A DNA stretch of 50,641 nucleotides from Pelomyxa schiedti (GCA_020536535.1 JAHLWZ010000910.1:1-50641); one strand, 5' to 3'. Shown: positions 141 through 50,641, numbered from the stretch's first letter. The notes: generated from the letters alone by a model not told the origin. Numbers and translations: made by a program.

Positions 141-2131
141 ATGGCGTGGGCTTCGGCACTGAGACGGTACAGCGAGGAACACGCGGCGCGGCCACGCGAC
201 GAGGAGCGAGACGAAGAGGACATACGGCGCCAGATGAGGGCGATGCTGTCGAGCGGTACATCGGTCTGCACGGTTCCCACAACGAGTGACCGTGGCGACC
301 CCGGGCCAACATCAACCACCACTTTCAACGCAACAACTTCATCAACAAGACCTGGAACTGCCACTACGGGGGGGATGCCCATGGACGGCGGGGCGAAACC
401 AATAAAGGGCCCCGCGCCGATTCCACGGTTCTACTTTGGGAAAAAACCACCTGCACGTATCTCTTGCACTCATGGGACATGATGGGGGAGGTCTTTTTTT
501 GAGCAAGTACCTTTCTGTGACGTTGGATGACAGGCAAAATCTGATTCTGAGGGGACATCTCTGGAGCGAAATGTCAGAGAACTCATGGACTTCCATATGA
601 GAAATCTGGCTAGCGAATTCGTAGCCAATTGGTGTGCACTATCTCCAAGTGATGTGGACTCCATGATGGATTTGCTAATGAAGAGATCTGACACCTATGA
701 GGGCGAGTCATGTGTGAGTTTTTTCTCCCCCTTCTTCATCTCTATTGCCAGGCACAGTAAAACTTTAATTGCTTTATCATGAATTCTCCATTCACTAGTT
801 ATCATTTCTTAGTTGGACTACGATACTTTTAAGCAAGTTGGGGCAGAGCTGGGTCATCGTTACCAGCCATACTTTACAGCATCTGTATTTGCATCTCTGC
901 CTCACGATCACTATGCTCGCATTTCTCTTAAACAGTTCCACGAGTTTGTGACCGAGTCAGGTAATCTCATCTCCCCCTTTCTTACTGTACTTAAATTTCT
1001 TTCACAGAGAAAGCTGTCTCCATTCTTTCAGAACTTATCAGATTCGATTCAACTGGTTCAGGTTTTCTTCAGGAGCAGGTATGAGCTCCTTTCTCCCAGT
1101 GTAACATCGTATGAGAGCTCACACCTTCTAGGACCTTCAACGATGCATTCAATCCTTACTTCCTTCCATCTCTGGACTTTCAAACATTCTCACCATGGAA
1201 CGAGAAGAATACTCTATGTATGCTGCTCGTCATTTCTTCTTTTTAGAGAAAACTTTTGGGGATGGTAAGTGTTCTTGGGATTGCTCCTACCCGTCAACTT
1301 CACTCAGGTAAACTCCCGCTGGTTCAAGCTGCATCTTGTGACTCCATGACAAGTCTGCATCTTCTACGTAACTATGTCCCTAGCTTCGATCAAGCATTTC
1401 TCGATTCCTCCAACAATTGGTTTACATTACAAAACTTCAGGCGACGTAGAGGTAATTGTTCCCCAAACAACTTTTCCTTGGCCTTACAATTGTGGCAGAG
1501 CTGTTCAAAAGACTGGATACAAACAGAAATGGTACCCTCAGTCAGTCCGAATTGCTAGGATACAGTACGGGGATAACAAAAGAGTTTGTTCAACAACTCT
1601 TCCAGAACATTCCCCTATCTCGTAACAGGGAAATGGTACTACCATCCCTTCATCCCTGGCTCTTCTTCAATTGACCTTTTCTATCAGACATACTCTTCAT
1701 TTCTGGACTTTGTGCTGGCAATGGAAAATAAGAAAAATCCACAGGCACTTTCCTATTTTTTCCGGGTTCTTGATTTAAACAAAGTCGGATTCTTGAGCAG
1801 CTTCAATCTCAACGTATTTTATAAGGTATGAACGTTGATTCCATTAAAATGCTTTTTTTCAGTTGTTCTTACGCAAACACAAAACAACAAACTATGTACA
1901 TAACAGGGTGTGTACAATAAATTAGAAATACGACGGTATGAAACACAAGGCAATGATCCAACACCATGGTTTGATGACGTGAGAGACGAGTTATTTGACA
2001 TGGTGAAGCCGAAGGATCCTTTGCATATCACAATGCAGGACTTATTGAATTGTGGGATGTGTGACGTGTTTGTGGGGGTGCTTATTGATGCCGATGTTTT
2101 CACTGTTTATGACCAGAGGTTTTGCTCGTAA
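141..2131 (+). CDS. PPP2R3C: Protein phosphatase 2A regulatory subunit B''-gamma (PPP2R3C / TON2-FASS-like), multi-exon
   Basis: Exon translations: IPRFYF, EF-hand FKRLDTNRNGTLSQSEL, FLDFVLAMENKKNPQALSYFFRVLDL, and FDDVRDELFDMVKPKDPLHITMQDLLN...VLIDADVFTVYDQR. These match the remembered B''-gamma consensus (YLDFVLALENRKEPAALQYIFKLLD; VKDEIFDMVKPKDPLKISLQDLIN). TAA at 2129-2131. The start ATG is a best guess. Confidence 0.88.
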
Positions 2132-2244
2132 AAAGAGAAAGAAAAAGAAAAAATGAAGCGATTTGAAACCCCTTGTATTTTAGTGTTTCTTCTTTCCCCT
2201 GAAGTTTGTGTGAGTAAACCAGATAAAAATTCACATGGATTATT

Positions 2245-5200
2245 AGCTACCTTCCCTTCCTCTTTTGGCTGGAGGACTCGGGCTTTTCAGGCTTCTCTTT
2301 GTTGCTGTTGCTTTTTGCATCCACTTTCTCCTCAGGTTTTGCAGCAACTTGGGGCTCTGTGTGACTCGTATGTTCCTCCCTGGGTTTTGAGTCTGAGTGT
2401 GAATCACCACTAGAATCAGGGTCTCTGCGTGGCGGGGGTGCCGCGGCTGATTGTGCAGGGGGGCTTATAAGCCCTTTTGGTGTCTGCAGGGTGGCTATAA
2501 CGATAGTAGTGTTGGAATTAGTGCCGGCATACAGTTTTCTCGATTATCATATCCAAAAATGCGGACCACGATATTTTGGTACAAGTGATGTCTGGATCCG
2601 GCTTGGATGTATCTATAACGAGTGCTAGCTCGGCTTGCTTGACGTTTTCCACTATGTTCATGCGGCACAGCTGTAACAAATCAGTCATGACCCATAGTGA
2701 GCAAGTGTTCGTTTCGTACCTTCATGAGAGTGGCAGCATGGGAAAACTTTTCTCTATCACGTTTGAACATGTCTGAAACCCATACGTTTTTTCCAACATT
2801 GACGGTGGGGCTCCTGATGCCGAAACCTTCTTCAGATAGCCAGTGACCAGCTGCAATGCTTTCATCAACCCACTCCTTTTTGATTACCCTAAGGGTTGAA
2901 TGTTACTTTGTTATGGTTTTGCTTTTTTGGAAATGTGAGAACCATCTTTTCAGAAGCCTAGCAGCCATTGCCTTCATTGTCTTGATTCCCACGTCGGGCA
3001 CAACGACATGCGTTATTGAATTGTCCCATTGTGGTGTATCTCGGACTTCTCCACCAAGTTTCTGAACTTTACCTGTAAGGTCCTTCTTTGGAATATCGTC
3101 CTTGAACCCAGAGAAGTTGACAACCACTGTTTTTGTGAAAACACGGCTAAAGGCTTAATGGAGGTAACCTCTGGGACTTTTGTTAACAGGTGCTATTGCG
3201 ATTTTTTCTGTGTGAGGCCTCTCAATTTCGGATGACGATAGCTTCTATGAAATTCTCAGTAGAGGGCAGGGAGTGCCATAAATACATACCTCGGAAGAGT
3301 GTTCTGTTCGTTTCCCATCAGGTGATTGTGATGAAGACCTGTCTGTTTCGCCAGGCTGTGGTGATGCCGGTTTTGGTTCGGTTCGTGGTTTTTTGGGTGG
3401 TGGTGCTACAGGCTTTTCAGAAAGATCTGTTGTCCCAGGCAATTGAGAGGGTGAGACAGGCAAAGGTACTTCTCGATTGCCTCTGTTGTAAGTATTAGAG
3501 GTCACCTGGTAGTTTGGCACTCACGGTGGAGGTCGTTTTGGCGAGGAGGGCTCAACAGCAACTGCTACAGCGGGAGAAACATGTGGTAAACGTCGTTTTT
3601 GATCTGGCTGTGGTAATGGAGAAGCCTCGGTATGCACCAACTTCTTCTGCATAACAGAAAGTGCCACATTTTTGGACTCCAACTCTACGTTCTGAAGCTA
3701 CGTAAGGAATTCCCGATTCAAAAGTGCAAAAGAAATACTTTAAGTTCCAATGCTCTTGTTTGTGTCTGTAATCTACTTTGGAGCTCATGCAACTGCGTTT
3801 CTCTTTCATCTAAACTATCCTTCATGGTCTCGTTATCATGAGCCAGATGCTTCATTTTTTCTTTGAGCGTCGCCAACTCTCCATCTTTATCCCTTGGAGA
3901 AAGTGAACGAAAAACCTCTTTGGGTTCCAGTCTTTTTACACTGTACAACACTTACTTGATCTTCAGCTCAAGTTCGTCCACTGCGGTTGAAGTACGTTGT
4001 TGCCCTTCTACTTCCGATAGTTTTTGTAATGTACGGTCATGTGTTTTTTTCATGCAAGTTAGTTCTACTTCTTGGAGTCGGTTCTTCACTAGGTCAGAAA
4101 GTTGTAATAAGGTTGTGCAATTAGTAACTCGTTCTTGTAGCTGCTCCTTTTCCGATGTTATTTGTTGCAGGGTCTTCTCTGATTTTTCGAAATCAGTCTT
4201 AAGTCTGGATAGTTCCATTTCATGAGATGATATTTGGAGTTTCATTGTCTGTGGCTATGAGATCGTTGACTGTAAATTGGAGAAAAACCTGAGTCTCTCC
4301 TTGGAGTGATTCAATTGTCTTTTGGGAAGTAGCGAGATCAATTTCACGTTGTTGCAGGGCTTCTGTCAAATTTTGAATCTAGAGATATATAAGTAACAAA
4401 GGTGATAAGCAGTGGAGCAACTTTATGGGATTGCAAAGGATCCTCCCTTGTGTCGATGAGATTGAAATTTTTTGAAGCAAAGGAAGGAAATACTTTGGGT
4501 TGGTCTCGAGTCTCTCCACTTTTTCATGGTAACTCTTGCACGAGTCCTTTAGAGAAGATATCTCAGACTCAAGTGCTAACAACTGCGATGAAGCCTTCTT
4601 ATAATCGTCAGACAGGCTGAAAAGAATGAATGTTGACATAATCGAGGTACATTGAATACCTTCTCTTCTGTGCAGTCAAGAGAGTGATACTTTGAACGTG
4701 TTCTTCATTTGCACACTTTAATGTCTGGATTTCAGCTTCCTAAAAAAACCTCAGATTGCCAATAATTTGTAAGATACCTGTTGCCTCTGAGCATCCGCAA
4801 GTTGATCGTTCTCACGTTTCATTTGGTTCACAACTTTGGAAAGTTCTTCTTGTGTAGCAGTGGAAAGGTTGAGTTCCTCCTGGTGGATGTCACAATACCT
4901 TTGAATGAAAGAGGTCGTTCACCTTCAATGCTGCTTCACTCTGTTTGAGCTGGAAATTCACCTTTTTCTCCTGTTTAAGTTCAGCTTTGATAGTAGCAGT
5001 TTCTTGCTCAAGGCTGTCAATTTTTATCTATTTGTAAACATGAATCATGATATTTAGGCTTCGAATCATAGGTTCCTTATATTCTTTGATGCTTGTTTCT
5101 AATTCTGCTTTAAATGTATCTGCCTTGGTTAATTTCCTTGGAGAAGTCAGTAGTTCATGAGGTTCATAATAATGTGCCTTTTCAACATATCGATTTCTTG

Positions 5201-43162: not shown

Positions 43163-45979
43163 CCCCTAACAAAATTTCAAGACAACTGGAATTTGTAAAT
43201 GTGCACAAAATTGGACTGGGAGTTCTTGCATGGAAGCAAATTGTAACTATTTATCCCTTAACTTCCCTTATTCTCTTTAGACCAATGCCCCAATAACTGC
43301 TCTGGAGTTCATGGACATTGTGATGCTACCACTGGGTTGTGTGCTTGTTTCTCTCCCTGGACACTTCCCGATTGCCTTTACGGTAGAAAGAGAAGTTAAA
43401 GAAGTTAACACTAACCTTTAGTAGCTCAATGTAACTTGAATTGTTCCTTCCCTCATGGAGTTTGTGACAAGTATGGTTAAATACTTCCCTTCTGATCTTT
43501 TGCCTTACAACAATAAGGCTCACTGGAGTTTGCAACTGTGTAACAGGGTACACGGGTAAAGGCTGTCAAATTGCAAATTTCACTTGTTCTCCCCCTTGTC
43601 AAAACGGAAATTGCAACTCTCAGTATAACTCATTGCCCAATATCAAATCTAACTGTTTAAAGAATGGGAAAGTGTGTCTGCCTGGCTAACGCATATGGTA
43701 ATGCTTGTGAGTACAAATATTGCCCACCCAAGTGCGAAGAACATGGCGTTTGCAACACTGTACAAACCCTCACAAAAGTTACCACCTTACCTAATGCCTT
43801 TGGCAGACCACTGGTGTATGCAAGTGCAGCCAATATTGGAAAGGAGACTCTTGTATGGAAGCTGATTGTATGAATTCTCTTCTCTTTCACTTCTTCTTAT
43901 CATTTCAGATACCTGCCCCAATAATTGCACCGGGTCCCACGGTCACTGTGACAAGACTACAGGCAAATGTGCGTGCTATGCCCCCTGGAGTCCTACTGAT
44001 TGCAAACTGGGTATGAAGTGAGAAATGCTTCCTCCACTCTAACCTAGGACAGCTACCTGCACTCTAAATTGCTCCTATCCCAATGGGCAGTGTGACCCGT
44101 AAGCTTTTTTTTCCTCTGAATTACTAGTAATAGTCTCACCAGGTATACTGGAACGTGCCACTGCAAATCAACATATACTGGAAATGGATGCCAGATTGCT
44201 AACTTTACATGTTCACCTCCGTGTAAACATGGCAATTGCAACCCCTCGTTGTTTCGAAATATGAAAGTGCTCTCTAACCAATATCCAGATCTGGTGAATG
44301 TGTCTGTTATGGTGGATACTATGGTCCCAGATGTCAGTATAAGCAAGTACGTAAATTTTTTTCACACAAAAACGACGTTGAATGATTTGCAAATCTAGTG
44401 TGGTGGCAAAACCCCATGTTCTTCTCATGGAGTTTGCCATAACATGACTGGCAATTGCACGTGTTCTGCCAACTATACTGGAAGTTACTGCGAGATTCCA
44501 AACTGTAAGTATTATCTTATCTCATTCTCTTTTGGACCTCATTTCGTAAGACCCCTGCCCAAAGAACTGCACAAATTCAAGCCGTGGAATCTGCAACACA
44601 CAAACAGTTTTTAATCAAATACATGACTATTTCTCACATTTACTTCAGGGTGCATGCATGTGTATCTATCCCTATACAGGCACAGATTGCTCTCTCAGTT
44701 GGTACCTCAAAGTTCACGCTTTTACTAATCCATTTCAGTGCAATGCCCATACAAATGCAGGGGGCATGGAAAATGTAATGAGACAACTGGGAAGTGCTCA
44801 TGCAATTACCCATATCTTCCCCCAGACTGCTACTTCAGTTGACCTTCACATCCTATTTTAATAACTGACGTTTTTTCAAGTGGGATGTCCATTAAACTGC
44901 TCAGGCCATGGAATATGTAACCCATTTAAGGGCACTTGCAGTTGCCAACCAATAACAGATTGGGCTGGAGTCAACTGCTCTCAAAGTATCTACATCTTGT
45001 TATCTTGTATTACTCAACTCACTGATTTCCCCTCGAAAAAGGGCTATGTCCAAATTCATGTTCCAATGCTGGGAACTGTAAAAATGATGGCACCTGCAAA
45101 TGCAAGTTTGGGGCAAAAGGCAAGGACTGTTCTGGAGAAAATTGGTGGATAATTGTAGTCTGTGCTGGTGCTGGAAGCCTTACTGTTGTAGGAGGGGCAA
45201 CTGCCGGGTTCGTTGCCGTAAGACAGTTCCGTATTCACCAAACGGCTAAGCGCTCTCGGTCTCGAACAAGCAAGTATATTGACATGGAGCCTCTAGGAGC
45301 TGCAACCGTTGGCGGCAGCTCATTTTCGTCTGTTTTTGACACCCTTGATACTGCCGGCGTCAAGTCCAACAAGAATGCTGACGCTGGTGATGGAGGCATT
45401 GAAATGGATACTATGGATAAGCACAACAAGAACCCCGAAAATGTGGAGACTGCCGCAGAAGCCGAAAGCAAGAGTGGTGAGAAGAGTGCTAGTGGCAGCC
45501 CAAGTGGGAGTAACCACAGTGCGGCTCCCAGTGGCAGTGCAAGTGCAAGCGGAAGCGGTAGCAATAAGGGCAGTGCAAGCGCCAGTGGCAGTGGCAGTGG
45601 CAGCAATCATGGCAGTGGAAGCGGAAGCGGAAGCGGAAGCGGAAGTGGAAGTGGAAATGGAAGCAACAAGGGCAGTGGAAGCGGAAGCGGAAGTGGAAAT
45701 GGAAGCAACAAGGGCAGTGGAAGCGGAAGCGGAAGCAACAACGGCAGTGGCAGTGGCAGTGGAAGTGGAAGCGGAAGTGGCAGCAACAAAGGAAGTGGAA
45801 GCGGAAGCAACAACGGCAGTGCAAGTGGAAGTGGAAGTGGCAATGGCAGTGGCAGTGGAAGCGGGAGCAACAAAGGAAGCGGGAGCGGAAGTGGCAGCAA
45901 CAAGGGCAGTGCAAGTGGAAGTGGGAGCAACAATGGAAGTGGCAGTGGAAGAAGTAGAAGCGGGAGTGGTAGCAGCTAA
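29062..45979 (+). CDS. Giant type I membrane protein: SP, 2x CBM6/35-like, LamG/ConA-like, plant-type LRR, IPT/TIG, ~80 tenascin-type EGF repeats, TM, Gly/Ser-rich tail; multi-exon
   Basis: FLEAEYY...GTYSVWILSR...MDKIMIT and LYKAES...PVWVRV...LDKIYIG (CBM-like); SITIEMW, WTHIAV, VDELRVWSTVLT (LamG); ALYQLYWATGGPDW...WYGLDC cap, then NNLVGTLP, NNLTGTIP, NSLSGNLP, NKLSGLFP (LRR); LLSITPNS...SNSLNFKY (IPT); CPxNCSxHGxCxxxTGxCxC repeats; TM WWIIVVCAGAGSLTVVGGATAGFVAV followed by RQFRIHQTAKRSRSR. TAA at 45977-45979. The start could also be the Met at ~29095. Confidence 0.85.
32880..45135 (+). repeat. EGF-like (tenascin-type) repeat array; ~35550-44520 is a ~620-640-bp higher-order repeat of four EGFs and five introns, ~15 copies
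   Basis: Recurring exon succession CPxKCExHG.C | TG.C.C..NWTG.SC | CP.NC.G.HG.CD..TG.C.C..PW..PDC | C.LNCSYP.G.CD | TG.C.C...YTGK.CQ.ANF.C.P.C.NG.CN. Unit starts at about 35554, 36170, 36780, 37400, 38025, 38660, 39280, 39925, 40560, 41185, 41815, 42455, 43075, 43725 and 44400. Confidence 0.9.
45530..45976 (+). repeat. Degenerate hexamer repeat (GGAAGT/GGCAGT/GGAAGC) encoding a cytoplasmic (GS)n tail punctuated by NK/NN
   Basis: ORF 45284-45979 translates to GSGSGSNKGSGSGS... Confidence 0.9.
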
Positions 45980-46209
45980 ATAACTGGAGTTAACCACGCC
46001 CACCCACAACCCTGTAATCTACATGTATTAAGATTTCAAAAACATGTTCCCCTCACATCAAACGAAGGTAACTTGCCCTAGAAAGTAATAGTTCGTTTCC
46101 TCCGATCGGTCTGAACATTTTTAGACCCATTTTCCAAGAAAGTCAGTTTCTTGGCCCAACCAGACCCTTTTCGTGCCTGTTGCCCTCTAGTAAAGCACAA
46201 CAACAACAA

Positions 46210-49200
46210 ATGCAACAGCAACACCATCACTCCATGCCTACGTCCACGAGGACGTCGACCCGCGGCACCAGCGACGTAGTGGATATTGACGACGAAGCTT
46301 TGCACCCCACCACCAACACCAACCACCACATTACGAACTCCAGTATCAGGCCCCAGTCCGTCCGTAAGTACCAACAGCAACAGAAACAAAAGCGGCGGCC
46401 GGCCACTGGGGTGGATATTGATTACAGTGACTCGGACACAACCCCCCGGACGCCACCCCCTTACGGCGCCAGCAACGACGGGGGGGCAGGAGCGGCGCAG
46501 GACGAGATGGACGAGGACTACGGGTATGGGGCAGGGGACGCGGACGGCGAAGGGGTGGAGGGGGAAGGAGACGGAGAAGGAGAGGCGGGAGGGAGCAAAG
46601 CGGGATGGGGATGGGGGTGGGCGGGGGGGATGGGGGTGGCCACGTGGAAGTGGTACGAGGTGTTGACCATCGTGGCCTTCTCCTGTTGTGCCTGCGTCAT
46701 TGTGGCCGCCGTATGCGTCGTGCCCCTCTACACTACCTCGATGTATGACTCCTTAGGTTGGTTGGCCATGCTTACCCCCTTTTTTTTTTTTGTCCCCGTG
46801 TTGTGGTTGATCGTTATGAATTCTCCTCGTTCCTTCAACCTTGCATTTGTTTACACTTCGTTTTTATACCAGTCAGCCGAACCAGGGCTACACTGAGTGG
46901 AACAGCCACTGACGCAGCTCAACAAATTGGTGAGAGGCTGGATAGCTATAGGTTGATGCTGGAAATGTACACCGAAGCTGTAGTTAGTGTATGCATGTGC
47001 AATAAAGCTTCGGAAGTAGTAACCTTTTTCCTTTAATTAGGAAATGTACCGCAATGTTTCTGTGGAAAAAAGAGCAAGTCCAAGCTGCTTTGGTTATGGG
47101 TCTTTGCTAGGTGTACGGCCAGTATACTACGAGAATTCTTCCGAGTGCAACTTGGGTTTGAGCTGTTTTGGGACTGAGCACCTTCAACCAGGGGATGACG
47201 GTTATGAGAAGATGATGAGCAAAATAACTTTGCTTATGTGGGGACAAACGCCATATCCAAACGAAATGGCTACCTCTTTTATGAACAAGTATCTCATCAG
47301 TGGTCTTGCTGTGATCATTGGAGGTTTTGCACGGATGTCACCTTGGTTTGATTTGCGCAATGTCTCTCAAGCAATTATTGATACTTTTATGGGAATGCAG
47401 AAATATATGGGACTTACAGAGCCAACTTGGACTCCCCCACTTTTTGACCCATTTGTTGGCCGTGGTGGCTGGAAAACAAGGTTCTATGCTCCAGTTTATA
47501 ATGCTGGAAATTTGTCTGGGCTTTCTGCACTTCAACTTTACATTGGGTATGATGTTCTTTTCTCCAACGTACTTCTAAGTATTTCAGTGAAACAGTTGCT
47601 TATATGGACACTGTCAGCAATTTGATGCCCTATGATGGGTACGCTCTTATTACTTCTAATGATGGCACCTTGCTTGCCATACCAGAGAGAGGCTGGTCTG
47701 ATTGGTCCTTGGGAAATGAGAATTTTAATTTCACAAGAGAAATGGAGCAGAACTCATTTGACCCCCAGTTTTGGAATATCTTCACAGTAAGAGCACAAGC
47801 AATCTTTTTTCCCATGCTTATCACCATAGAATGAACAGTTCGCTTCAATTGGGATCCCTGTCAACAATTCCATCATCCAATCAGGAGGATCCAACGCAAC
47901 TGGCTGTTGTGAGGTGATGTTGAATGGTAAGGACACAATCATATCGTGGTCTCAGATACCCACTGCAAACTGGATTGTGATAGCCGTGCTTGATAAAGAT
48001 GAAGCTCTTAGTGCACAGCAGGCCGCATTGACTAGAATTATTACCATCTCTGTCATTATGGCCTGTATTGTGCTGATTGTTTCTGTATCAATTGCTATTT
48101 ACATTGGTGTCAAGAGGCAGTACAGTCACCTCTCCAACAAGGTATGTTGCTGTGAAAAAGTTCTCTTCCTAACTGTGAAAAAAAAAAGGTTGCAGATCTT
48201 CATATGAAACTCGAAGAAGCCGAACAACAACTCACTAAATTGAAAGTAACTGGAGATGATGTAGCTGTGACAGCACTGAGCTCTGGTCTTGACAAAGTTG
48301 TTCCAACATTGTTTCTGAACCTCCTTCTTTTGACTAATTGGATAATAAAGGTCACAACTGTGATATCAAGGCTTACATTGCATCCGGACCAAGGCTTAAA
48401 TCCAGATGATATTGAAGTCCTAAAACTGGCGAATATGCTTTTAATGACCCGAAACTTCGCCACCATTAAACCCCAGTCCGAGCTCACAGAGAACCAGCAC
48501 CAGTTCATTCTTGACTGTGGAATGCAAGTCGACGAGAGAACCTCCGAGTTCAAGAAGATACATACTAAGCAATCAACCAGACATCACTTGCGCAGCAATG
48601 GCAGGAGTGCCAATACTAGTTTTAGTGGAATTTCATTTACCAGATCACTGGAAGAGTCTGATATTTATACACATGTCATGGATGATATACCCTCTCTCCA
48701 TGATTGGAGTTTTGATGTCTTCTCTGTATGACTCCGAATTTTTTTTTTTTTTGAAAATAGGATACCAATTTCAGTTTATAGGTTGACAAACAAGTTTTAG
48801 CGAACAAACAAAATCTTCTCAGTGCAGTAGGGTTAAACCTTCTTTCTGAACACCGTCTTCTTCCGCATCACTCCCCTAGTCTCCACCTAGATGTGGCCAA
48901 ATTTCTATCCTTCACAGAAAAACTAAAAGAAGGCTATACTGAACACACAAATCCCTTCCACAACTACCTTCATGCTGCTGATGTGACGCAGGCAATGAAT
49001 GTTCTTTTACAGATGGCCATTCAGTCATCAGCTGAGTTTGAGGCATGCCTCTCTCCCCTAGATAAGCTGGCTTGCATTATTGCAACATTATCTCATGACT
49101 ACAAGGTTGGCCGCTAATACATCATAAAATATAGACACCCTAACTCACCTTTTAGCACCCTGGCGTTAATAATAACTTCTTGAAAGCAACAGTCAACCCC

Positions 49201-49925
49201 ATTTACATTCACTATGGAGATGCAGTTCTCGAACGGATGCATGCCGCCTCAGCACTAGAAGTTCTATTCTTTCAGCCAGAGTGCCGGGCCCTGCACAAGC
49301 TTGGTGTTGATGACCAGCTACAAGTTCATTCAACAGTTATGAGTCTTATCCTGGCAACTGACATGGCCAAACACATTGACATAATGGAGACAATGAAGAG
49401 CCTGGGGGTGGGCACTAGAACCACAACCGCTGCTCTTTTCACATCCAAAGCGGACCCTCAGTTTGTTAAATCAAATAAGATGCTGGTTCTGCAAGTACTC
49501 ATGAAGATATCTGACCTCTCCAATGTCATCCGGGACTGGCCAGGTTTTTACATTATAGTCCAAATTTCACTCTAATCACTGATGTAGTATGCAAGCAGTG
49601 GACATTCAACCTTGTGAAGTAATAAAATCGCTTTCCCATATCACACTAAAAAGAAAATACAGTGAATTCAAAGGGCAAGGAGAAGAAGAAAAACGGCAAG
49701 GAATTCCCACCAGTAAATTCATGGATGGCTCCACTACACCCCAGGAGATGCAAAACACGTAACTATCCAGTTACCAAAATTCTGACTAACATTGATAACA
49801 ACAGATTCATACCACTTATTGTTATACCACTTCTCAAGACGATCACCACACTCTTTCCCAACTTTGACATTCTGGAAAAAAGAGCCTGGGAAAATCTGGA
49901 GAACTGGCGAACAATGGCATCATAA
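46210..49925 (+). CDS. Membrane-anchored class I cyclic-nucleotide phosphodiesterase with extracellular dCache sensor domain, multi-exon
   Basis: TM1 WYEVLTIVAFSCCACVIVAAVCVVPLY; dCache-like EPTWTPPLFDPF...FYAPVYNAG...GYALITSNDGTLLA...IISWSQIPTANWIVIAV; TM2 IITISVIMACIVLIVSVSIAIYIGV. PDEase_I motifs WSFDVF, NPFHNYLHAADV, SHDYK|HPGVNNNFL, VLERMH, ATDMAKH, MKISDLSN, EMQNT|FIPLIVIPL. TAA at 49923-49925. Confidence 0.9.
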
Positions 49926-50189
49926 CAAACCAACCCATGGGACACATAACCAAACTGTAAAGTAATTTACTGTAGGAAATAAAAGAAAAAAGAGTACCAC
50001 ACAACCCACTAAACACACCATGTGAAGGTACAAAGATAAAAAAAAGGGAAAAAGGGTAACCACCGAAACACACAACGCGTTGTGTGTTTCGGTGGAGAAG
50101 GAGTTGGGTAGGCTCTGGTGCCAGTACATCAGTGGGGGAAGGGCACACAAGAAACTGATGACTGAATAGAGAGTAAATATAGTGCAACT

Positions 50190-50641
50190 TGGTTAAGAAC
50201 CTAAATCAGTCAGAATCACTTTGGCCCCAGCACAAAATGGATGCACACACTGTGGTCTGTTGCCAGAATGTCAGTTACTTTGGAAGTGGTTCAAGGCAAT
50301 TTAGGCATTGAAGTTTTTGGATGGAGTAATTGACAATATACATTGAACGAAGTCAAGGCTGAATTTTGTCTCATTTTTCGAAAATTTTTTGGAACTTGCT
50401 GGACTGGATCCTAACACTTCTGTGTCGGCAGTCGACTGCCCTACGGCTATGCAACGTGGCTTAAAAGGGTCTTGGAAATAAAAAATACCAAGAACGAAAT
50501 GATGAACAAAAGCAACGCTAGCACCAATTGTTTTGGTTACGGCCATATTAGTTGGTAAACTCCACTTCCCGTCCGATCAGTGAAGATAAACCAACTGAAG
50601 CACTGCTAGTACTAGGGTAAGGGATTACCTGGGAGCGCTGT
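50190..50641 (-). CDS. Possible 3' exons of a gene entering from beyond the window
   Basis: Splice-like GT/AG boundaries and an open stretch DPFKPRCIAVGQSTADTEVLGSSPASSKKFSKNETKFSLDF; no recognisable domain. Confidence 0.25.

Follow-up and report, generated by a model that had tools for sequence, protein, structure and literature searches.

Introduction

Textbook accounts of cyclic-nucleotide signalling place receptors on the side of synthesis, either through G-protein-coupled receptors that act on cyclases or as receptor guanylyl cyclases, and have the phosphodiesterases (PDEs) regulated from inside the cell. Extracellular sensors are built into cyclases in animal receptor guanylyl cyclases and trypanosome receptor adenylyl cyclases and, to our knowledge, the sole characterised receptor-type class I PDE is Rh-PDE. 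This choanoflagellate protein carries a light-driven rhodopsin of eight transmembrane (TM) helices, a 76-residue helical linker and a C-terminal PDE (PMC7644710, PMC8774190). The Dictyostelium cyclase ACG has the order CHASE, TM, cyclase (mentioned in PMC5447177). Here we describe a gene in a stretch of 50,641 nucleotides from the archamoeba Pelomyxa schiedti (GCA_020536535.1, JAHLWZ010000910.1:1-50641; the whole stretch is hereafter the window) that encodes a class I PDE preceded by two TM segments and, between them, an ectodomain very probably of the dCache type. On balance we favour the reading that its product is a receptor enzyme, in which a cue sensed outside the cell sets the breakdown of cyclic nucleotides.

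The dCache_1 domains described in eukaryotes belong to the alpha2delta subunits of calcium channels, CACHD1 and their kin, and have a VWA domain inserted in the dCache (PMC8915833). Guanylate cyclases and PDEs are reported to be expanded in Mastigamoeba balamuthi (PMC8136499).

Architecture and predicted membrane topology

The coding region (46234..49925, + strand) comprises 12 exons and 11 introns, and its joined exons encode 1032 aa that are identical to an NCBI protein of P. schiedti (P0004 in this text) listed under the product name cAMP-specific 3',5'-cAMP phosphodiesterase 4. The C-terminal part is the catalytic domain of a class I cyclic-nucleotide PDE (48956..49868, aa 772-1014, five exons), which matches PDEase_I (PF00233) with 206.2 bits (E 8.3e-61, cut-off 24.8) over profile positions 1-232 of 238. 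Upstream of it lies the ectodomain (46729..48036, aa 166-517, 352 aa, five exons), which a profile of its family assigns to the dCache-type double PDC sensors. The ectodomain is flanked by TM1 (46660..46728, aa 143-165, hydropathy peak 2.77) and TM2 (48037..48111, aa 518-542, hydropathy peak 2.91), and TM2 continues into a juxtamembrane heptad helix (48112..48245, aa 543-571, interrupted by the intron 48142-48188) and a linker (48246..48817, aa 572-725). Ahead of TM1 is an acidic, Gly-rich N-terminal tail (46234..46659, aa 1-142) that has no signal peptide, is read as cytosolic and reaches the cut-off of no Pfam family.

Hydropathy analysis of P0004 returned exactly two TM segments, one on either side of the ectodomain, and a Lys-Arg pair follows TM2 immediately on its C-terminal side. 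Seven of the nine N-x-S/T sequons fall within the 352-aa loop between the TM segments. Two loop features, the FN(F/Y)T sequon and the SCF cysteine, are conserved wherever a homologue reaches those columns, the one from Mastigella included, and the SSEC cysteine does not vary among the four family members. The two TM segments, the loop sequons, the conserved cysteines and the Lys-Arg pair together predict that the loop is outside the cell or lumenal and the PDE in the cytosol. An earlier note, written from the sequence of the window alone, had proposed the order TM1-dCache-TM2-coiled coil-PDEase_I and likened it to that of a bacterial chemoreceptor; the two hydropathy peaks, the heptad helix and the Pfam match to the PDE bear this order out.

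Paralogues and a sister-genus homologue

At least three genes of Pelomyxa keep the same architecture, as does the sister genus Mastigella. Two paralogues in the same assembly (GCA_020536535.1), P0001 and P0005, share 54-56% identity with P0004 in the regions searched and 66-67% from TM2 to the PDE. Searches of the genome with tblastn placed the TM1 and N-helix exons of P0001 (contig JAHLWZ010000088) just 5' of its annotated start, and showed that the ectodomain exons of P0005 (JAHLWZ010000257) reach the end of the contig, which is why the P0005 protein begins within the Cache domain. A homologous TM1 exon lies upstream of a paralogue at L002:7552-7878, and a further copy is represented by an N-terminal fragment, P0002. 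The Mastigella eilhardi homologue, P0006, is an open reading frame (ORF) of 816 aa from a Trinity assembly in EukProt.

Beyond these genera the searches were negative. A phmmer search of 1.84 billion representative proteins with exon 3 as the query gave three matches only, one of them from M. eilhardi (EukProt), and word-indexed searches with the ectodomain and linker returned Pelomyxa paralogues only; among those matches, the linker region was confined to three Pelomyxa proteins (P0004, P0001 and P0005). A pattern search of metagenome contigs produced 192 pattern matches, none of which was confirmed. Thus, none of the phmmer, word-indexed and metagenome-contig searches found the architecture elsewhere.

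The annotation of these proteins deserves two remarks. P0004, P0001 and P0005 are named at NCBI either 'PDE 4' or 'calcium/calmodulin-dependent PDE 1C', and neither name mentions a membrane sensor; a plain 'PDE 4' label thus hides the architecture from anyone who reads the annotation. The model of P0005 (JAHLWZ010000257.1, gene 579-4128, 991 aa) looks chimeric, with about 460 aa of unrelated sequence and no Pfam hit past the normal C-terminus of the PDE (...WRTMAS).

Proposed coupling of the ectodomain to the phosphodiesterase

From within TM2 onwards, hydrophobic residues (V, Y, L, V, L, L, A, L, L) recur over 29 residues with the spacing 4-3-4-3-4-3-4-3. In the alignment from TM2 to the PDE, the stretch QY(S/A)(H/R)LSNKVADL has stayed constant between Pelomyxa and Mastigella while its flanks diverged, and an invariant TM2-proximal helix amid diverged flanks is the signature of a signalling element. 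AlphaFold2 (AF2) modelled TM2 and the heptad region as one continuous helix, at low confidence. The linker begins with a conserved helical part (LLMTRNF..K, LTENQHQFILDCGMQV). The next 40-50 aa or so are variable and rich in Ser, Thr and Arg, with the common motif RS.N(T/S)S(F/L)S; no Pfam family matched the linker. The AF2 model of TM2, linker and PDE together was uninformative on linker packing (mean pLDDT, the predicted local distance difference test, of 36.6). Further, Pfam searches of P0004 at E<0.1 detected neither MCPsignal nor HisKA/HATPase output domains.

In the mechanism that we consider most likely, sensor, TM helices and coiled coil would all contribute to a dimer, as in bacterial dCache receptors. 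A small molecule other than an alpha-amino acid, perhaps one bearing a carboxylate, would bind the sensor and displace TM2 and the heptad helix, and the conserved helical linker would then alter the restraint on the PDE dimer, such that cyclic-nucleotide breakdown would track the outside cue. The Ser/Thr-rich stretch of the linker may add feedback phosphorylation. The dimer, the binding of a ligand, the transmembrane coupling and its sign and the nucleotide substrate are features of this scheme that we infer, and the direct ligand-gated breakdown of cAMP or cGMP that the earlier note had deduced would follow by analogy with the bacterial receptors. Its most specific form, a pelomyxid chemoreceptor assembled from a bacterial-type dCache and a eukaryotic PDE in which an extracellular small molecule directly switches cAMP or cGMP breakdown, we put forward tentatively, with less confidence than the receptor enzyme in general.

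Several observations weigh against a receptor enzyme. Some concern the route of the signal: Pfam detected no HAMP domain in P0004 (E<0.1), and the PDE starts about 200 residues from TM2, a distance that is in part variable and probably disordered and makes a poor rigid transmitter. The proposed mechanism is weakest at this point, where a signal would have to cross a linker that is variable in part. Others concern the sensor, where the match of P0004 to dCache_1 (PF02743) has 19.8 bits (E 6.4e-4) and stays below the gathering score of 45, and where the AF2 model of the ectodomain has a mean pLDDT of 46.6, with a distal module that is poorly modelled (pLDDT <50) and TM-scores of only 0.27-0.38 for its dCache matches in Foldseek. 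In the PDE, the position of the ENHH motif reads LERMH (E847, H850), with Met for His at one site. Finally, the locus is present in four sequencing runs of one sample, and the contigs are all unspliced and identical to the window.

The best-placed alternative, which we regard as unlikely, is that the ectodomain anchors, localises, dimerises or adheres, possibly at an internal membrane, while the PDE is constitutive or controlled from inside, for instance if the Ser/Thr/Arg-rich linker is phosphorylated. The long and partly variable path from the heptad helix to the PDE, with its RS.N(T/S)S(F/L)S motif, would suit this arrangement, as would the lack of HAMP or any other transmitter domain recognised by Pfam and the loss of the canonical amino-acid pocket motif described below. 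Other protist class I PDEs, such as those of apicomplexans and Giardia, also have TM segments and no known ligand. A mere anchor does not, however, lead one to expect a TM2-proximal helix that is invariant between genera while its flanks diverged, nor an ectodomain that at least three paralogues and Mastigella have kept intact, R311 and P314 of the distal module included. Moreover, a dCache domain between two TM helices is, as far as known, a sensor (PMC8915833). For these reasons we continue to prefer the receptor enzyme.

The ectodomain as a probable dCache sensor

Single-sequence searches of the ectodomain against the PDB sequences found nothing significant. We therefore rest the Cache call on a family profile, because the Pfam dCache_1 scores remain under the cut-off: 22 bits (E 1.3e-4) for the paralogue P0001, only 15.9 bits for the best match in an exon-wise Pfam scan of the ectodomain and, in Mastigella P0006, no Pfam match at E<0.1. 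The sub-threshold matches in P0004 and P0001 lie just ahead of TM2, where they are expected. The profile was made from an alignment of the four available members and searched against all PDB sequences. Its best match was 3lib, the ectodomain of mmHK1S-Z3, a histidine kinase from Methanosarcina mazei (E 2.9e-5), followed by Mlp37 and Mlp24 of Vibrio (2.4e-3 to 0.06) and PctA/B/C of Pseudomonas (0.07-0.34). Nine of the 11 matches at E<=10 were dCache sensors, among them the nine best, and the alignments were collinear; no alpha2delta chain was among the matches at this threshold. The 3lib match spans 133 columns, from the end of the distal module into the start of the proximal one, and is joined by a second collinear segment before TM2.

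The AF2 model of the ectodomain, built from the four-sequence alignment, was used for the order of secondary-structure elements and for the proximal module only. The element order is dCache-like, with a long helix, a beta/alpha/beta module, a connecting helix, a second module and a helix that runs into TM2. In a Foldseek search with this model, the best 50 matches were all dCache, with E values down to 3e-8. In VIA-align, the proximal module (model residues 216-343, pLDDT 56-85) superposed on PAS/PDC folds with a Z of 9.1 and a root-mean-square deviation of 2.7 A over 90 aa; for the dCache sensors McpH, PctD, KinD and PscC, the Z was 8-9. The look-alikes of the sensor in ESM-Atlas were a histidine kinase sensor, a PDC domain like that of methyl-accepting chemotaxis proteins (MCPs), CHASE and dCache_1.

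We are highly confident that the ectodomain is a dCache, and give the sequence-profile evidence more weight than the three-dimensional model. It is very unlikely that we are dealing with another or new extracellular fold whose weak dCache signal reflects a generic PAS-like alpha/beta module, although such a fold would account for the Pfam dCache_1 scores of 19.8-22 bits against a cut-off of 45, the lack of a significant single-sequence match in the PDB and the AF2 confidence below 50 in the distal half; further, photoactive yellow protein and other PAS domains also reach a VIA-align Z of about 9. A generic module would hardly give a profile match of E 2.9e-5 whose 133 columns cross the module boundary, with a second collinear segment before TM2, or place dCache sensors at nine of 11 PDB matches and at all nine best, or reproduce the dCache order of secondary-structure elements. 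The earlier note had called the ectodomain a dCache and had named a fold other than Cache as the finding that would overturn its reading. The assignment stands on the matches to solved structures, the nine best of which are all dCache, but not on Pfam, where dCache_1 stays below its cut-off.

The pocket has departed from the amino-acid type. The dCache_1AA motif consists of Y121, R126, W128, Y144 and D173 in PctA numbering (Gumerov et al., PMC8915833). In the HMMER alignment with Mlp37, a motif Tyr (APYAD) and the Asp (FYDVSL) stand opposite Leu and Gln of the family, so the motif is not intact, as the earlier note had also concluded. The motif Arg and Trp are present in the form R-x-x-P-W, with no Tyr five residues upstream of the Arg. 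In P0004 these residues are R311-M-S-P314-W (47332..47346) in the membrane-distal module, which line up in HMMER with G-R-F-V-P-Y-W of the archaeal sensor 3lib; the Arg and the Pro are invariant (columns R147 and P150 of the four-member alignment). An anionic ligand might be contacted by R311, which we regard as a candidate residue of the pocket, and the retained Arg-x-x-Pro-Trp would fit a ligand that bears a carboxylate and is not an amino acid.

The PDE catalytic domain

By residue content, the PDE domain is catalytically complete. The first metal-site and acid-base His residues lie in H773-N-Y-L-H777 (48959..48973), aligned to YHNSLHAADV of PDE4C. The HD signature, H818-D819-Y-K/H822 (49094..49158), is split by the intron 49106-49155 and aligned to HDVDHPG. 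The metal-binding Asp and the purine-contacting Asn are those of D941-L-S-N944 (49513..49524), aligned to ADLSN of PDE4C and DISN of PDE9A, and the invariant purine-clamping Gln is Q991 (49751..49753) of EMQNTFIPLIV, aligned to sQvgFIdyI of PDE4C and aQigFI of PDE9A. Thus, H773, H777, H818, D819, H822, E847, H850, D941, N944 and Q991 all line up with PDE4C and PDE9A, and the catalytic residues, together with the stretch ATDMAKH, are invariant among the four homologues. The earlier note had judged the metal-binding His/Asp motifs and the invariant Gln intact and had asked for a HMMER comparison with PDEase_I; the alignments with PDE4C and PDE9A, and the match at 206 bits, agree with it on both counts.

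The same alignments do not single out a subfamily. Alignment with PDB sequences ran end to end for PDE4C (2.7e-33), PDE9A (2.3e-32) and PDE4D and PDE1B (both about 6e-31), and the scores of the four differ by no more than 8 bits. None of the UCR, GAF, PAS, REC or calmodulin-related families was matched in P0004 by Pfam. With no UCR or other regulatory family, and with equal likeness to PDE9A and PDE1B, the NCBI names 'PDE 4' and 'PDE 1C' are mere labels. Orthology to PDE4, which the NCBI name of P0004 implies, was considered and ruled out, since UCR1/UCR2 are absent and PDE9A and PDE1B are equally similar. Nor do the residues point to a substrate. The earlier note had taken the Asn of DLSN as leaning towards cAMP or dual specificity, and this does not hold, because the Asn also occurs in the cGMP-specific PDE9A, whose match is as good as that of PDE4.

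A dead or pseudogenised PDE, which would leave a receptor-like scaffold that binds cyclic nucleotides without hydrolysing them, is less likely still than a foreign ectodomain fold. It could draw on ERMH in the place of ENHH and on the Ser that replaces the Ala of the usual ADLSN (SDLSN here). Variants of the ERHH type, however, exist among active mammalian PDEs, and no metal ligand is missing, nor is the acid-base His or the Gln, all of which are invariant in the four homologues, in a reading frame that has neither frameshift nor stop codon.

One gene, and one transcript in Mastigella

The locus is an intact gene of P. schiedti. It lies on the + strand, scattered over many short ORFs in the three-frame translation of 46100-50300, and the joined coding region contains no frameshift or stop codon. 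Exons 1-4 (46234-46756, 46873-46988, 47041-47546 and 47588-47786), 5-8 (47830-48141, 48189-48296, 48351-48725 and 48782-49105) and 9-12 (49156-49543, 49588-49618, 49663-49758 and 49805-49925) all have translations that match P0004. All 11 introns are GT-AG and measure 41-116 nt, with a GC content of 0.25-0.41 compared to 0.47 in the exons. A gene with 11 introns fits the assembly of P. schiedti, which is intron-dense, with 7.43 introns per gene and an N50 of 51.5 kb (PMC8887013). The NCBI model starts at the ATG at 46234; the in-frame ATG at 46210 is equally possible and would add 8 aa. For exon 2, a donor at 46983 was dropped in favour of 46989 after comparison with P0004 and the paralogues.

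Two small features of the gene structure are easily missed. The intron 48297-48350 (54 nt) is in frame and free of stop codons, hence invisible to a reading of ORFs, and was revealed by the paralogues P0001 and P0005 and by Mastigella P0006. Reading through it adds 18 hydrophobic residues (VVPTLFLNLLLLTNWIIK), and model residues 595-599 then show a third hydropathy peak that is spurious. Within the PDE domain, a micro-exon of 31 nt (49588-49618, VCKQWTFNLV) has a 44-nt intron on either side; the proteins of Mastigella and of the paralogues conserve its peptide in the form VC.(Q/K/R)W..NL.

Sensor and PDE belong to one gene. An unspliced Logan contig of 3483 nt covers 46610-50092 and so carries both halves on one DNA molecule. 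In M. eilhardi, the transcript-derived P0006 has ectodomain, TM2, linker and PDE in one frame, with a PDEase_I match of 212 bits. The earlier note had placed Cache and PDE in one gene at 46210-49925 and had looked to transcripts that separate the two parts as the evidence to the contrary; the identity with P0004 upholds the single gene, and the Mastigella transcript carries both parts in one ORF. A shorter M. eilhardi isoform, P0003, departs from P0006 straight after HDFK, a divergence that coincides with the codon boundary of the intron 49106-49155 of the window (HDYK|HPG). This suggests that the intron position is conserved and that P0003 is a retained-intron isoform, which would truncate the PDE. 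Least credible of all is a wrong merger in the annotation of two adjacent genes, a Cache receptor and a PDE, for which one could cite that the four sequencing runs gave unspliced contigs only, but against which stand the Mastigella transcript across both halves, the same order of parts in three paralogues on separate contigs and, after the TM2 exon, a GT-AG intron (48142-48188) of 47 nt, too short to accommodate a terminator and a promoter.

Surroundings of the gene

Upstream, an EGF-like (epidermal growth factor-like) Cys-rich exon (44880-45152, +) and a 231-aa ORF (45284-45979, +) that ends in a long low-complexity tail of the type (GSGSGS-N/K-GS)n probably form the 3' end of an adjacent gene for a surface protein (44880-45979). 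Its end lies 230-255 nt from the start of the PDE gene, depending on the start codon. Downstream, in 50072-50300, each of the four runs shows a rise in contig depth from about 5-19 to 28-138 and has a loose end at position 50072, preceded by the same foreign sequence. The last ~570 nt of the window probably belong to a repeated element, or to a repeat that was collapsed where the scaffold ends.

Comparison with known systems

The ectodomain and its membrane anchoring have their closest likeness in the prokaryotic dCache_1 sensors (PctA/B/C, Mlp24, Mlp37 and 3LIB), which share with the Pelomyxa protein the order TM1, double PDC, TM2, a helix that runs from TM2 into the cytoplasm and the lack of a VWA insertion. 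They differ in output, which is MCPsignal, HATPase, GGDEF or EAL in the prokaryotic sensors and a eukaryotic class I PDE in Pelomyxa. The Pelomyxa ectodomain is also longer, with about 350 aa and sites ready for glycosylation, whereas the solved sensors that it matched have 220-300 aa; and the protein has no HAMP domain and no AA_motif and is encoded by a gene with 11 spliceosomal introns. With MCPs and sensor histidine kinases it has only the sensor topology in common; it may work alike, but it is not a member of either group. The eukaryotic alpha2delta and CACHD1 proteins belong to the same superfamily and expose their dCache outside the cell, as is predicted for the Pelomyxa protein. They are, however, auxiliary subunits with no enzyme, whereas the Pelomyxa ectodomain lacks the VWA domain and is prokaryote-like.

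At the other end of the protein, mammalian PDE4, PDE9 and PDE1 align over the full catalytic length with all catalytic residues (E 2.7e-33 to 1e-30). The Pelomyxa PDE is equidistant from PDE4, PDE9A and PDE1B and has none of the UCR, calmodulin-binding, GAF, PAS or REC regions. For the whole protein, the nearest look-alike by language-model features (0.89) is an ESM-Atlas cluster of chlorophyte PDEase_I proteins with 151 members of about 1216 aa, 17% of which have CHASE in the automatic annotation. This likeness is one of language-model features and automatic annotation alone, in an unrelated lineage and with CHASE in the place of dCache. Pairings of a PDC-type sensor with a PDE thus probably exist elsewhere, unannotated. 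We found no paper in the literature searched that describes Cache or CHASE joined to a class I PDE in eukaryotes.

In logic, the nearest systems are ACG, which is also amoebozoan and has a PDC-related CHASE sensor, and the other receptor cyclases. Like the Pelomyxa protein, these combine a sensor outside the cell with one or two TM helices, a coiled coil and an enzyme of cyclic-nucleotide metabolism, but they synthesise the messenger that the Pelomyxa enzyme is predicted to break down. If the Pelomyxa protein is gated as proposed, the degradation arm of cyclic-nucleotide signalling can be a primary sensory step, and a bacterial two-TM Cache sensor would, in a rare case, be wired to a eukaryotic enzyme. 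The cue could then also be lumenal, such as a metabolite of prokaryotic symbionts. A protein gated in this way could also serve as a modular scaffold on which to build chemogenetic tools for lowering cAMP or cGMP on demand, because dCache sensors of known ligand could be exchanged into it. The gene is, in addition, an entry point to the little-explored signalling of anaerobic Archamoebae.

The sensor-PDE protein extends the known receptor enzymes of cyclic-nucleotide metabolism with a domain pairing that is new to the literature searched. Its nearest characterised counterpart is Rh-PDE, which likewise joins a membrane sensor to a C-terminal PDE through a helical linker. Whereas Rh-PDE is an opisthokont protein with a rhodopsin sensor and a linker of 76 residues, the amoebozoan protein has an extracellular domain and about 200 aa between TM2 and the PDE, and P0004 matches no Pfam rhodopsin family and has two TM helices only. 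The Pelomyxa protein, if it responds to an outside cue as proposed, would be a second, independent invention of the receptor PDE after the light-gated Rh-PDE.

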